A stretch of DNA of 64,000 bases from NCBI RefSeq assembly GCF_902713615.1, contig NC_052168.1:4712001-4776000 (forward strand). Reading direction: 5' to 3'. Positions 46,860 through 57,145 of the stretch are shown in pieces (the stretch's first letter is position 1; every line of letters begins with the position of its first letter). Made by a program: the position numbers and the translations under genes. The notes below the pieces were generated by a model. The model was not told the origin of the DNA, searched no databases, and was given only the letters and a program-made list of their open reading frames with translations. Source of the stretch: Scyliorhinus canicula (lineage: Eukaryota).

Positions 46860-47112
46860 CATTTGTGGGTTATCTATTCTTGACCTTCCAGTAGCAAGAT
46901 AAGAAACATTCTGATTGTCAACAATGGTAACTAATCAAGGACACAGCCATGACAAGGGTTGATTGAGCGAGTGGGTGTATCTGGTGAACTCAATGTTGAG
47001 AGTGTGTATAAAGAGGGATGGTTTTTGGGAAGTCAACATTCAGAGATCTGGGCTGGACTGTCAAGTTCACAGGACAAGGACGATCACAGCTTCTTGAAGA
47101 CTCCTGGATACC
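46860..47112 (+). promoter_or_regulatory. Promoter and non-coding exon 1 of the secretin-like gene
   Basis: TATAAA at 47007-47012, GATA motifs at 46870 and 46897, exon ~47038-47112 ending at a consensus donor CC|gtaagt. Confidence 0.65.
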
Positions 47113-48866
47113 GTAAGTAATCACTGTCCGTGTGTTAATCTTCTTCCTATTTTGCTAGCATGGGGGAAGAGGTGACAGTACAGAATCTCTCTCGTACGTA
47201 GTCGGAAACAGAGGGGTGTCTACCCGTCCACTGCCTTTTCCCGGGAACCCTCAAAGCCCGAGGCAGTGCCGGCAACAAACATTCCCAGGTCAGCCCTGTG
47301 CTGGCGGCACAGCGGTTAGCACTGTTGCCTCACAGCACCAGGGTCCCGGGTTCGATTCCCGGCTTGGATCACTGCCTGTGCGGAGTCTGCACGTCCTCCC
47401 CGTGTTCGGCAAGGGTTTCCTCCGGGTGCTCCGGTTTCCTCCCACAAGTCCCGGAAGACGTGCTTGTTAGGCGAATTGGACATTCTGAATTCTCCCGCTG
47501 TGTACCCAAACAGGCGCCGGAATGTGGCGACTAGGGGCTTTTCACAGTAACTTCATTGCAGTGTTAATGTAAGCCTACTTGTGACAATAAAGATTATTAT
47601 TATTACTGTACATGGTGCAGCATTTCGTAACCCCTGGAATTCTCTAGCGGGTTCATGTCTGAGGTGTTTTTGTGCCATTTTGTAACATATATTCCTGCTA
47701 TTTTATGCGATATTGTCCTGAAGTACTGGTGTGACTGGGACATCAGGGAAGGAATCTGAATCCAAATTGATTTTGACCCTATTGGTAACTCCAGTTTTGC
47801 GCCAATGTGGTTGACTCTTGCCTCAGGCAAGACACTTAGTTGTGTCTGATGCACTATTAGTGGACTATTAACATCACCACCACCTTGTCAGGGTGATTAC
47901 AGAATGGTTAATAAATGCTGGCGCGGTGGTTAGCACTGGGACTGCGGCGTCGAGGTCCCGGGTTCAAATCCCGGCTCTGGGTCACTGTCCGTGTGGGGTT
48001 TGCACATTCTCCCCGTGTCTGTGTGGGTTTCACCCCCACAACCCAAAGATAGGGCAGCACGGTAGCATTGTGGATAGCACAATCGCTTCACAGCTCCAGG
48101 GTCCCAGGTTCAATTCCGGCTTGGGTCACTGTCTGTGCGGAGTCTGCACATCCTCCCCGTGTGTGCGTGGGTTTCCTCTGGGTTCTCCGGTTTCCTCCCA
48201 CAGTCCAAAGATGTGCAGGTTAGGTGGATTGGTCATGTTAAATTGCCCTTAGTGTCCAAAATTGCCCTTAGTGTTGGGTGGGGTTACTGGGTTATGGGGA
48301 TAGGGTGGAGGTGTTGACCTTGGTTGGGGTGCTCTTTCCAGGAGCCGGTGCAGACTCGATGGGCCGAATGGCCTCCTTCTGCACTGTAAATTCTGTAAAT
48401 TCTATGTGCAGGTTACGCTAAATTGCACCTTAATTGGGAAAAAAAAATAATTGAGTACTCTAAATTTATAAAACATAAATCAATAAATGCCGGCTGTGAG
48501 GCTGGTTGAGCACAGGGCTAAATCGCTGGCTTTTAATGCAGGCCAGCAGCACGGTTCAATTCCCGTACCAGCCTCCCCGAACAGGCGCCGGAATGTGGCG
48601 ACTAGGGGCTTTTCACAGTAACTTCATTTGAAGCCGACTTGTGACAATAAGCGATTTTCATTTCATTTCATTTCATGTTGCATCCATGCAAAGAGTGAAC
48701 AAACTGTGAACAAGGGTTCTTCTTCAGTGAAATACTCTCTGAAAACAGGACCACGTTATGGAGGGGTGATGGGATTGGGCAAGAAGTCAGAAGAACTTTC
48801 GACTTAAGTCGTCTATCGTCTTGAGATAATGATGAGGCTAAAATCCAATTCTCTTGTTACAGAGTG

Positions 48867-48952
48867 ATGACGAGCAGACCTTTCAGCAATATGCAGGTTC
48901 TCCTCATTCTGACCCTCCTTCTGCAAGTGGCAAAGCCTTTACCTCCAAACAG
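48867..48952 (+). CDS. Secretin-family precursor exon 2: signal peptide MTSRPFSNMQVLLILTLLLQVAKPLPPN
   Basis: ctcttgttacag acceptor (exon starts 48863), donor gtgagg, phase 2; hydrophobic core; AKPLPP resembles human SCT ARPAPP. Confidence 0.85.
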
Positions 48953-49819
48953 GTGAGGAGCGACGCTCCAGGTGCTGATTTCTCACCCGCCGTTCTGTCC
49001 TCCTGTCGTGTGCCCCTCAAGACAAAATATCTTCGGAGTGGGGAGGTCAGGATTCTGGCTTCTGTGGATTGCCCAGACATTTTTGAGGAGTGTTCAGCAC
49101 AGAAGGAGGCCATTTGGCCCATTGTGCGAAAAGCTGGCTTTCTGTCAGTTGGTGTAGTCCCCACTGCCCCATGAGTTTGCTTTTCAAGTATTTACCCAAT
49201 TCCTTTTTTGAAAGTTAGTATCCATGGCCCTCTCGAGTAGCCCATTCCAGATCACTGCATTTCAAAAATAGTCGCTGTTTACTCTTTGCTTTTTTTTTGC
49301 CAGTGGAAACAAATTATTTTTCTATTTGCACTCTCAAAGTCCTTCTTAATTTTTAACACCTCGAATAAATCTAACTTGTTGCTGAAGAAAGAGGCGTGCT
49401 GTCCGAGCTTTTCATTTTGGGACAGACAGAAAAATGTGTTATTCTTACATCTGATGAGTACAAGTCAGCAAACTTTGACAGCATTGGTTTTTTTTCTCAG
49501 CAGTGGCAGAGGTCTATACAATCAAGCAGCTATGAATCTCATGTGATTGAAAAGGCATCAGCTATGTGCAGAGTAGGTGGATTGGCCACGCTAAATTGCC
49601 CCTTAATAGAAAAAATAATTGGGTAATCTAAATTTTTTAAAAAATAAATTTTTTTTTTTAAAAGAAAAGGCATCAGCTGGACGCATGTCTACATTTGCCT
49701 GTGCTCAATCCAGTCTGTTTTGTGTTAGTCCGCACTGTGAGCCCTTTACTTTACTCTTGTGACCCAGCCTGGATTGGAATATGCCCAGTCCCATTCCCTG
49801 GCCGCCCAGTCACTGTGAC

Positions 49820-50995
49820 ACATGATCCTCTTAAGGTTAACGTGCAGGCTCAGTCGGCAGTTAGGAAGGCAAATGCAATGTTAACATTCATGTCAAGAGG
49901 GATAGGATACGGGCAGCACGGTGGCCTAGTGGTTAGTACAACCGCCTCACGGCGCTGAGGTCCCAGGTTCGATCCCGGCTCTGGGTCACTGTCCGTGTGG
50001 AGTTTGCACATTCTCCCCGTGTCTGCGTGGGTTTCGCCCCCACAACCCAAAAATGTGCAGAGTAGGTGGATTGGCCACGCTAAATTGCCCCTTAATTGGA
50101 AAAAATAATTGGGTAATCTAAATTTAAAAAAAAAAAAAAAAAGAGGGATAGGATACAAGAGCAGGGATGTGATTCTGAGGCCGTATAAGGCTCTGGTCAG
50201 ACCCCATTTGGAGTATTGTGAGCAGTTTTGGGCCCGTATCTTTTTTTAAATAAAAAATTTAGAGCGTCCAATTCATTTTTTTACAATTAAGGGGCAATTT
50301 AGCGTGGCCAATCCACCTAGCCTGTACATCTTTGGGTTGTGGGGGCGAAACCCACGAAAACACGGGGAGAATGTGCAAACTCCACACGGACAGTGGCCCA
50401 GAGCCGGGATCGAACCTGGGACCTCGGCGCCATGAGGCAGCAATGCTAACCACTGCGCCACCGTGCTGCCCTTGGGCCCTGTATCCAAGGAAGGATGTGC
50501 TGGGCCTTGGAAAGGGTCCAGAGGAGGTTCACAAGAATGATCCCTGGAATGAAGAGCTTGTCGTATGAGGAACGGCTGAGGACTCTGGGTCTGTACTCGT
50601 TGGAGTTTAGAAGGATGAGGGGGAATCTCATTGAAAGTTGCAGGACTGTGTAGAGTTGACGTGGAGAGGATGTTTCCACTTGTAGGAAAAATTAGAACCT
50701 GAGGGCACAGCCTCAAAGTGATGGGACGATCCTTTAAAACAGAGATGAGGAGGAATTTCTTCAGCGAGAGGGTGGTGAATCTGTGGAACTCTTTGCCGCA
50801 GAAGGCTGTGGAGGCCAAATCACTGAGTGTCTTTAAGACAGAGATAGATAGGATCTTGATTAATAAGGGAATCGGGGTTATGGGGAGAAGGCAGGAGAAT
50901 GGGGATCAGAAAAATATCAGCCATGATTGAATGGAGGAGCAGACTCGACAGGCCGAGTGGCCTAATTCTGCTCCTATGTCCGATGGTCTTATGAA
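49820..50995 (+). mobile_element. CR1 LINE 3' fragment interrupted by two V-SINEs (~49911-50140 +, ~50245-50472 -)
   Basis: AVRKANAML...; FKTEMRRNFFSERVVNLWNSLPQKAVEA; CR1 tail. Confidence 0.9.
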
Positions 50996-51041
50996 ACGGC
51001 CACTTGAATTTTTTAAACGCCGCTCTCTCCCTTTATCGCAG

Positions 51042-56108: not shown

Positions 56109-56584
56109 TGTGGTGATATGCATCGCTGTAAATACACGAGGGGTTAATGTAAATACACTATGACTAAGTAAACACTAGAGGGAGCACCAGAGACGTCATG
56201 ACATGCAGACATACAGCTAATGAAAACATAGAATAGGGCACGACCAATGGGCAGCCAAGACACCCAGAGGTGACACTACCACAAGGGGGCATTACACAAC
56301 CCATATATAAGAGCAGGGCACACATGCTCTGTCTCTTTCCACAGGGAACACTTAGAGAGAAGGACAGGGGCAGATCAGAAGCATCACCACCACCACGTGG
56401 CTTAGAGCAGACTGGTTAGTTAGGCTGAGTTACTATAGCAAGATTAGCAGGAGAGTCAAACTCATAGAGAACTGTGCTAATGGTTCAATAAATCACACTG
56501 AACTGACTTCAATGTCTGGAGTATCTTTTGGTAAAAGCTGCATCGAGTTGCAGCCTGTGTTATCCCAGAGTACACAACACAACA
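56109..56584 (+). mobile_element. Solo LTR inserted in a CR1 tail
   Basis: TGTGG...CAACA, perfect GGGTC TSD, TATA and AATAAA. Confidence 0.87.
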
Positions 56585-56667
56585 GGGTCGAATGGCCCAA
56601 GCATGCTCCTATTTCTTGCTCTTCACAGCTCTTATTGAAATGGCAGGATAGGCTGGAGGAGCCGGAT

Positions 56668-56977
56668 AATTCCCTACCTTGCTTATCCAGCCCAATTCCC
56701 TCCTCTCCCTACCTTGCTTACCCAGCCCAATTCCCTCCTCTCCCTACCTTGCTTATCCAGCCCAATTCCCTCCTCTCCCTACCTTGCTTATCCAGCCCAA
56801 TTCCCTCCTCTCCCTACCTTGCTTATCCAGCCCAATTCCCTCCTCTCCCTACCTTGCTTATCCAGCCCAATTCCCTCCTCTTCCTACCTTGCTTATCCAG
56901 CCCAATTCCCTCCTCTTCCTACCTTGCTTATCCAGCCCAATTCCCTCCTCTCCCTACCTTGCTTATCCAGCCCAATT
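56668..56977. repeat. Tandem repeat, 35-bp unit, ~8-9 copies
   Basis: aattccctcctctccctaccttgcttatccagccc. Confidence 0.95.
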
Positions 56978-57018
56978 CAATCCACCAGGACTGACCCCAA
57001 TTCTTCGATTAATTTCAG

Positions 57019-57145
57019 AATTTTATCCGATGGCTCCCATTGGCCAGCTGCAGTTTTGATAGATCACCAGACTTGTGTGACCATCCGCCAGTTGGCAATT
57101 AACCAACAATTACAAACCTTCCTGACCACGATGGACTTTCAATAA
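57019..57145 (+). CDS. Secretin-family precursor probable last coding exon: ILSDGSHWPAAVLIDHQTCVTIRQLAINQQLQTFLTTMDFQ*
   Basis: CTGAC branch point near 56991, aatttcag acceptor, phase-2 frame open to TAA; supplies a second Cys; alternative terminal acceptor at 58589. Confidence 0.6.

Follow-up and report, generated by a model that had tools for sequence, protein, structure and literature searches.

Fishes were for decades said to be without secretin. This gap was closed in 2025 with gar and elephant shark secretin (PMC12714231), when Morash et al. 2025 tied the elephant shark "prosecretin" LOC121850333 to SCT by synteny. In that work, which also covers zebrafish and gar sct, the cartilaginous-fish gene was recognized via bridging homology and conserved synteny with the 11p15.5 region (irf7, ric8a and others); human 11p15.5 holds IRF7, SCT and RIC8A, and elephant shark irf7 lies near sct (PMC12714231 S3 Table). 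For the catshark, a 2014 transcriptome of pancreas, brain and liver, with gut unsampled, contained no secretin transcript, and VIP transcripts were reported in the same study (PMC4362833).

We analyzed a 64,000-nucleotide stretch of Scyliorhinus canicula DNA (hereafter, the window) and found a plus-strand locus that, judging from its sequence, is very probably an intact gene for the secretin precursor and the ortholog of SCT. Its features are as follows.

42083..42099, plus strand: alternative first coding exon of RefSeq isoform X2, placed by its sequence and GT donor.
47007..47012, plus strand: TATAAA box with a putative promoter role.
47018..47112, plus strand: upstream first exon of RefSeq isoform X1, whose CDS starts at the ATG at 47018.
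48863..48952, plus strand: signal-peptide exon, with AG before 48863 and a conserved start codon at 48867; includes the start of the propeptide.
51042..51146, plus strand: hormone exon (exon 2), with a His-Lys-Arg cleavage site and then a secretin-like peptide beginning HSDSLFTSELSKLRR.
52031..52153, plus strand: exon 3, with the C-terminal extension of the peptide, a Lys-Val-Lys-Arg site and a proline-rich HLSDGE... segment.
54084..54209, plus strand: exon 4, with the first conserved cysteine and a CLRWF motif.
57019..57145, plus strand: exon 5, which carries the second conserved cysteine and, in a highly conserved stretch, the C-terminal tail, and has the TAA stop.

The five coding exons (48867-48952, 51042-51146, 52031-52153, 54084-54209 and 57019-57145) are preceded by AG and followed by GT, with two exceptions: the first opens with the start codon, and the last closes with the TAA stop. 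Because their lengths are, in order, 86, 105, 123, 126 and 127 nt, all introns are in phase 2; the spliced join of 567 nt gives a single 188-aa ORF, and the remaining two frames are rich in stops. This match of exons, phases and ORF is far more than would be expected by chance. A first-pass annotation of this DNA had read the same five GT-AG exons, phase-2 junctions and 188-aa ORF, and it was correct to the base: the ORF is identical, letter for letter, to residues 8-195 of XP_038639277.1 ("uncharacterized protein LOC119956275 isoform X2", Scyliorhinus canicula). Its suggestion that the gene may be unannotated was mistaken, as RefSeq holds LOC119956275 with isoforms X1 and X2, and S. torazame and Cetorhinus also carry gene models, named 'uncharacterized' or 'hypothetical'. 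Since the ORF is identical to part of an "uncharacterized" RefSeq protein, the catshark gene has been modeled though unnamed.

Both RefSeq isoforms extend the N-terminus beyond the start codon at 48867. Ahead of its GT donor, the exon at 42083..42099 codes for MEAQTG and supplies two bases, the first and second, of a Gly codon; joining it to 48863 recreates the X2 N-terminus, and the recorded CDS span of 15,063 nt is exactly 42083 to 57145. The upstream exon used in X1 ends at 47112 with the donor CC/GTAAGT. For this region, the first-pass annotation had described a TATA box, which is present, and a non-coding exon 1. The latter is coding in RefSeq X1, but its ATG at 47018 is probably upstream of the true transcription start because it lies only 6 nt past the TATA box, which favors the non-coding reading. 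We consider the start codon at 48867 arguably better than either RefSeq extension, and the primary transcript would comprise one or two alternative 5' exons plus the five coding exons.

The product had been called a secretin-family prepro-hormone, with a Pfam Hormone_2 search proposed as a check, and that search bore the assignment out (PF00123 cutoff = 21.2 bits; exon 2 alone = 29.5 bits; whole protein = 25.1 bits). Pfam gave no match on exons 1, 3, 4 and 5, and no further Hormone_2-like exon was found within the window beside exon 2. Searched exhaustively by phmmer, exon 2 matched SCT-type and VIP/PHI-type precursors only, with GHRH, PACAP and glucagon absent from the matches. The first-pass placement of the peptide nearest to secretin was overstated: the peptide alone is not demonstrably nearer to secretin than to VIP, which equals secretin in a phmmer search of the PDB (VIP = 18.2 bits; secretin = 18.0 bits). 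In a 27-column peptide tree built without PACAP, GHRH or GCG sequences, sharks fell between the SCT and VIP+PHI groups (join support 45/79), the row nearest to them was a frog SCT homolog, and the VIP+PHI clade (support 89/88) left the shark peptides outside. The 27-residue peptide by itself cannot separate secretin from VIP. Support for the SCT assignment comes from the other parts of the precursor and from the neighboring genes.

In favor of a gene that is instead VIP/PHI-like, or another secretin-superfamily paralog, are the NSIL with which the C-terminal half of the shark peptide ends, as in VIP, the marginal first place of VIP in the PDB search, the lack of a supported shark-SCT join in the 27-aa tree, and the name 'VIP peptides-like' that NCBI automatically gave to the paddlefish and sturgeon homologs. 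We consider this reading very unlikely, given that the shark precursor contains one Hormone_2 stretch where VIP precursors contain two, that the VIP+PHI clade leaves sharks out, that the flanking genes appear to match the SCT region and not the VIP region, and that comparisons of whole precursors point to secretin. A profile of shark and paddlefish precursors matched a tortoise 'secretin' (4.5e-24), a bird 'SECR' (5.7e-21) and a frog homolog, and no VIP, PACAP or GHRH precursor was matched at E<=0.01. By hhalign, sharks aligned with tetrapod SCT precursors at 6.5e-10 versus 4.3e-8 for VIP precursors, and the nearest named Atlas cluster was 'Secretin'.

A C-terminal domain with two cysteines is likewise common to shark and secretin precursors. 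With the hormone left out, this domain alone matched bony-vertebrate prosecretins with modest statistics (BLASTP 7e-4; hhalign 0.0047); both cysteines align with those of bony-vertebrate prosecretin C-termini, and the Cys-to-Cys spacing is identical. Compared with tortoise secretin, the C-terminal part of the shark precursor gave no BLASTP alignment. An AlphaFold2 model from a 10-sequence alignment (mean pLDDT 50.9; pTM 0.33) was all-helical, with a pLDDT of only 56-66 in the C-terminal half, and appears too poor for a fold search. SCT orthology, which agrees with the cartilaginous-fish secretin of the first-pass annotation, is the best reading of the precursor profile, the C-terminal domain and the flanking genes.

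Upstream of catshark sct, on the minus strand, lies an IRF gene whose association domain scored best with IRF5 in the PDB and whose DNA-binding exon scored best with IRF3, above human IRF7; an Atlas comparison did not discriminate its type. Because the DNA-binding exon scores higher with human IRF3, the label irf7 would be positional only, and we call this gene only IRF3/7-type. Downstream, ric8a is present in three shark species (catshark, S. torazame and basking shark). In the window the Ric8 gene starts 6,117 nt past the CDS, at the ATG at 63262; within the 280-aa ORF at 62899-63738, only the part from this ATG is the ric8a first exon, and the ORF as a whole had no Pfam or PDB match. The arrangement IRF...sct...ric8a is common to catshark, basking shark and S. 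torazame, in agreement with PMC12714231 S3 Table.

Elephant shark has cdhr5b between sct and irf7 and drd4 on the other side, whereas no cadherin exons were seen between the catshark genes: a six-frame search for cadherin (cdhr5) motifs from the IRF gene to sct gave nothing convincing. The closest SCT neighbors in other species, drd4, cdhr5 and deaf1, were not found in the window. Their absence, together with the lost amidation site of the shark peptide and the apparent decay of exon 3, could fit a lineage-specific SCT duplicate, with the true elasmobranch secretin elsewhere, beside drd4, deaf1 and cdhr5. This explanation is also very unlikely: each shark species yielded one gene in the database searches, the window has a single Hormone_2-like exon, the same gene order recurs in basking shark and S. 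torazame, and conservation of the hormone block is strong over a distance that is roughly the carcharhiniform-lamniform split.

Orthologs with the same exon structure in S. torazame and basking shark support an intact SCT gene. S. torazame keeps all eight splice sites and the frame, and its signal-peptide exon remains intact despite a 9-nt deletion, which is in frame; the basking shark model begins at the Met equivalent to the 48867 start. Conservation between catshark and basking shark is block-wise, centered on the hormone (22/27 identical) and the C-terminal block (42/56, 75%), with the remaining blocks 54-59% identical. That the gene is decaying or not expressed, or that gene prediction produced it as an artefact, is the least likely of the explanations we weighed. 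This would be in keeping with the lack of secretin in three catshark tissues (PMC4362833) and with a dN/dS of ~0.5 between the two Scyliorhinus species, an estimate from ~31 changes. Against it stand the frame, start, stop and every splice site, intact in three species, identical junctions in three separate annotations, the block-wise conservation, and 31-mers of exon 2 in several runs with a guessed RNA label from at least three studies. In a separate 5.6-kb query of the runs, repeats dominated the sampled words and nothing informative was obtained.

True sharks, too, would then have an SCT gene that is intact and conserved, though it is still "uncharacterized" in public annotation. As secretin was already recognized in cartilaginous fish in 2025, naming the catshark gene is a modest gain that leaves the overall picture unchanged; a new name for LOC119956275 and for its orthologs in S. 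torazame and Cetorhinus would aid comparative endocrinology and would account for the miss of the 2014 catshark survey.

A signal peptide at the N-terminus, with a hydrophobic core at residues 9-19 (Kyte-Doolittle up to 3.4), would direct the precursor into the secretory pathway, and a prohormone convertase would cut after the Lys-Arg at residues 31-32, directly before the His-Ser-Asp of the peptide, to expose His1 of what would be a ligand for a class-B GPCR. Neither catshark nor basking shark has a Gly-Lys/Arg-Arg site for amidation and cleavage after residue 27: at positions 28-30, catshark reads Glu-Ala-Gln and basking shark Gly-Thr-Gln, and the first dibasic site lies 11-13 residues on. 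Because Gly-Lys-Arg is missing and the next dibasic site is Lys-Val-Lys-Arg, we predict that residues 33-70 of the 188-aa model are released as a non-amidated secretin of 38 residues with a C-terminal extension. The absent amidation site bears on the form of the product, not on the ancestry of the gene. The remainder of the precursor would consist of a proline-rich second-peptide remnant and the conserved two-cysteine C-terminal domain; expression is predicted in, most probably, endocrine cells of the gut, and the predicted target is probably the secretin receptor.

The HLSDGE... segment of exon 3 may correspond, in decayed form, to the second peptide that ray-finned fishes have. An hhalign comparison of exon 3 with that peptide was weak (P 0.014), no BLASTP alignment was obtained between the middle region of the shark precursor and paddlefish peptide 2, and Pfam had no match for the second-peptide segment in shark, paddlefish or arowana. 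We put forward, as a tentative and rather doubtful proposal, that the elasmobranch prosecretin keeps an ancestral jawed-vertebrate layout of two peptides and a disulfide-capable C-terminal domain, complementary to that of teleosts, with the amidation site lost and a 38-40-residue non-amidated 'long secretin' as the result. Sharks may have kept peptide 1 (secretin proper), teleosts peptide 2 and chondrosteans both, and the CLxW...C domain, present across gnathostomes, may be an additional functional module. Morash et al. 2025 (PMC12714231) had suggested in general terms that the peptides were retained reciprocally; none of the shark-specific points appeared in the papers we found. The predicted long non-amidated peptide and the two-cysteine domain are concrete targets for peptidomics and receptor assays.

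Among known precursors, those of VIP/PHI resemble the shark protein in their Hormone_2 fold class, H-S-D start and NSIL end of the 27-mer, but differ in having two intact peptides, no CLxW...C C-terminal domain and another chromosomal neighborhood. The chondrostean (paddlefish and sturgeon) 'VIP peptides-like' proteins (P0022/P0031/P0032; 30% identity over 182 residues, E 5e-16) have the same module order and Cys-to-Cys spacing as the sharks, and keep GAKR after the first peptide and an intact second peptide (QLGDIEFTNKYADYL...). The teleost arowana (P0035) retains the second peptide alone, whereas the shark segment is proline-rich and not helix-like. Tetrapod two-peptide secretin precursors (SCT-LP + SCT; tortoise P0008, birds P0016/P0033, marsupials P0023) differ from the sharks, which have a single Hormone_2 peptide without Gly-Lys/Arg-Arg after residue 27. 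As to which tetrapod peptide corresponds, BLASTP of the shark peptide and its downstream flank via paddlefish pairs it with the second (SCT proper), and MAFFT instead pairs it with the first. Sharks and tetrapod secretin precursors have in common a signal peptide, a basic cleavage site, the H-[SA]-D-G-x-F-T-S-E-L-S-K core, and a C-terminal CLxW motif with a second Cys followed by ...QL; conservation of the region C-terminal to the secretin peptide is common to catshark and the sct genes of PMC12714231.

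The coding exons proposed by the first-pass annotation, at 48867-48952, 51042-51146 (exon 2, the hormone exon), 52031-52153, 54084-54209 and 57019-57145, are flanked by AG and GT except at the start codon and stop, and their lengths (86, 105, 123, 126 and 127 nt) place all introns in phase 2. Joined, they form a 567-nt ORF with 188 codons and a TAA stop, and the other two frames contain many stops; the window contains no runs of N. A word-indexed search returned the S. canicula "uncharacterized protein LOC119956275 isoform X2" (195 aa) and the basking shark (Cetorhinus maximus) "uncharacterized protein LOC144669437" (190 aa). 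Residues 8-195 of isoform X2 (XP_038639277.1) are identical to the 188-aa product, so that the five-exon model with its phase-2 introns was exact. The following features lie at the 5' end of the locus.

42083-42099, plus strand, small exon giving isoform X2 its seven extra residues (RefSeq comparison)
47007-47012, plus strand, TATAAA (sequence)
47112, plus strand, end of the upstream exon, with a GTAAGT donor (sequence)
48863, plus strand, start of the ATG-bearing exon, preceded by AG (sequence)

The stored CDS span in GCA_902713615.2 (15,063 nt) corresponds exactly to 42083 to 57145. The locus is already annotated in S. canicula, without a name, and the suggestion that it may be unannotated was mistaken, since RefSeq LOC119956275 models it as isoforms X1 and X2. 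Our literature search found no paper naming a catshark secretin gene, and no secretin transcript was reported from catshark pancreas, brain or liver (PMC4362833). The upstream exon, which the first-pass annotation took to be non-coding, has the TATA box and donor described for it, but isoform X1 (XP_038639276.1, 221 aa) treats it as coding, with 33 additional residues starting at an ATG at 47018. This ATG is 6 nt past the TATA box and would therefore sit upstream of TATA-directed transcription start. Because of this proximity, and because the start Met of the basking shark model is equivalent to 48867, we favour 48867 as the probable biological start.

Residues 9-19 of the predicted precursor form an N-terminal hydrophobic core, after which Pro-Leu-Pro-Pro-Asn-Arg-His-Lys-Arg leads into His-Ser-Asp. 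Pfam Hormone_2 (cutoff 21.2 bits) matched exon 2 alone at 29.5 bits and the whole protein at 25.1 bits; the other exons matched no Pfam family, and exon 2 is the sole Hormone_2-like exon within the window.

The 27-residue peptide alone is insufficient to settle whether the hormone is secretin or another family member. The sequence resembles secretin in the N-terminal half (FTSELSKLR) and VIP at the end (NSIL). By phmmer against the PDB it scored 18.2 bits with VIP and 18.0 bits with human secretin, and by direct count it is identical at 12/24 residues to the segment of human secretin in that match and at 11/27 to VIP. Searched exhaustively with phmmer, the 34 residues encoded by exon 2 gave 18 non-self matches, including eight secretin precursors (tortoise, birds and marsupials) and about seven VIP/PHI precursors; GHRH, PACAP and glucagon were absent from all 18. 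A maximum-likelihood tree of 37 peptides and 27 columns placed the sharks between the SCT (secretin) group and a VIP+PHI clade, with support of 45/79 for the shark-SCT join and 89/88 for the clade that excludes the sharks. The best matches to the shark peptide also included two adjacent genes of the frog Engystomops pustulosus, each encoding two near-identical tandem secretin/VIP-like peptides, one of which begins with Gln, not His; they could represent skin-type members of the family, or members amplified in some other way.

The secretin assignment draws on the rest of the precursor and on the neighbouring genes. A profile of the three sharks and a paddlefish homologue recovered, at E<=0.01, tortoise "secretin" (4.5e-24), bird "SECR" (5.7e-21), sturgeon homologues, a frog homologue and an arowana fragment, and no VIP, PACAP or GHRH precursor. 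By hhalign, the sharks matched tetrapod SCT precursors at 6.5e-10 versus 4.3e-8 for VIP precursors. Alignment revealed a C-terminal domain common to sharks, chondrosteans, frog, birds, tortoise and possum, with its first Cys in a CLxW(F/L) motif and its second followed by ...QL. With the hormone part left out, the shark and paddlefish C-termini still aligned by BLASTP (7e-4) at both cysteines, which span 32 residues inclusive in each, and profile against profile the hormone-less C-termini gave an E of 0.0047. The nearest named Atlas cluster to the 188-aa protein was "Secretin" (0.92, 196 shared features), which we treat as a lead only.

Genes were identified on both sides of the locus.

8835-9245, minus strand, IRF association domain exon (Pfam IRF-3, 1.5e-26)
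14995-15192 and 18492-18665, minus strand, IRF DNA-binding exons carrying FRIPWKH and WKRNFRSALNRK
63262 to about 63350, plus strand, first coding exon of ric8a, with an ATG and then a Ric-8A-like N-terminus

The IRF gene lies upstream of sct on the minus strand. Against the PDB its DNA-binding exon matched human IRF3 best (51 bits; IRF7, 22-26 bits), so we call it IRF3/7-type; by position only, it is an irf7 candidate. Downstream, the ric8a ATG is exactly 6,117 nt past the sct stop, where the stored annotation puts the next gene (Ric8 domain), and the encoded N-terminus weakly matches residues 2-29 of PDB Ric-8A chains. In basking shark a minus-strand IRF gene overlaps the locus, with a Ric8 gene 6 kb downstream; in the congener S. 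torazame, Ric8 is 10 kb downstream. Human 11p15.5 holds IRF7, SCT and RIC8A. We consider it very likely that this locus is the catshark SCT orthologue.

Between the two IRF DNA-binding exons, a 3-kb tandem array (15196-18221; 51-nt unit, about 60 copies) creates spurious 600-aa minus-strand ORFs. Further tandem arrays and examples of a SINE-like element are as follows.

25552-26786, array of a 14-nt unit
36560-39093, array of a 50-nt unit
39089-40407, array of a 37-nt unit
56671-56978, array of a 35-nt unit
57397-58462, array of a 17-nt unit
47300-47600, 48050-48400, 49900-50470, 52590-53240, 54675-54970, 55560-55740 and 62000-62860, both strands, SINE-like copies

The arrays at 36.5-40.4 kb cause a strong negative GC skew, and the 17-nt array just past the sct stop has a counterpart in S. 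torazame. The 14-nt array interrupts degraded LTR-retrotransposon remains (about 24000-28500), whose ORF fragments, reverse-transcriptase-like and integrase-like, lie on opposite strands. The SINE-like element, about 200-300 nt long, occurs in many copies, sct introns included; the S. torazame contig carries it too (70-94% identity).

Introns and exons alike are about 88% identical in nucleotide sequence between the window and the colinear S. torazame contig. Every splice site is kept, exon 1 differs by an in-frame 9-nt deletion, and a 159-aa partial "hypothetical protein" from that species, found by the exhaustive phmmer search, is 97% identical to exon 2 and colinear on through exons 3-5. 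Exons 2-5 carry about 19.5 non-synonymous and 11.5 synonymous changes, a dN/dS near 0.5 that alone is weak evidence. Basking shark is a far more distant comparison.

Identity to basking shark by precursor block
Hormone block, 27 residues: 22/27, 81%
C-terminal 56 residues: 42/56, 75%
Other precursor blocks: 54-59%

A functional prohormone in which two modules are constrained would be expected to show this block pattern.

Processing of the shark precursor would differ from the amidated form. Gly-Lys-Arg is absent after residue 27, where catshark has Glu-Ala-Gln and basking shark Gly-Thr-Gln, and the next dibasic site in catshark, Lys-Val-Lys-Arg, is 11 residues on. Under standard processing rules, cleavage there and carboxypeptidase trimming would yield a 38-residue, non-amidated product. 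By BLASTP, the paddlefish first peptide with its KRS-x-x-E-x-SGL flank aligned to the second tetrapod peptide (SCT proper), so the shark peptide is more probably secretin itself than the secretin-like peptide of birds. After cleavage, the proline-rich shark exon 3 segment begins His-Leu-Ser-Asp-Gly-Glu and positionally matches Gln-Leu-Gly-Asp-Ile-Glu-Phe-Thr... of paddlefish, sturgeon and arowana. Its similarity to this fish second-peptide segment is weak (hhalign P 0.014); BLASTP gave no alignment with the paddlefish second peptide, and Pfam matched nothing in the segment, even in paddlefish. In arowana, a teleost whose precursor has no first peptide, it is the second-peptide segment that survives. 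Morash et al. described a region with conservation across fishes that in zebrafish is processed to pyroglutamyl peptides (PMC12714231), and the segment probably corresponds to it.

Within the window we did not find drd4, deaf1 or cdhr5, and a simple motif scan from IRF to sct (19000-42000) found no cadherin-repeat motifs. In elephant shark irf7 is about 50 kb from sct, and in gar ric8a adjoins deaf1 and sct (synteny table, PMC12714231). In elephant shark cdhr5b lies between irf7 and sct; either gene order differs in sharks or the scan missed split exons. What is new here is the naming of the gene and the elasmobranch-specific details of its precursor, no more: zebrafish sct had been identified by bridging via gar and the elephant shark gene labelled prosecretin, in a study that showed conserved sct synteny and discussed reciprocal retention of the two peptides (PLoS Biol 2025, PMC12714231).
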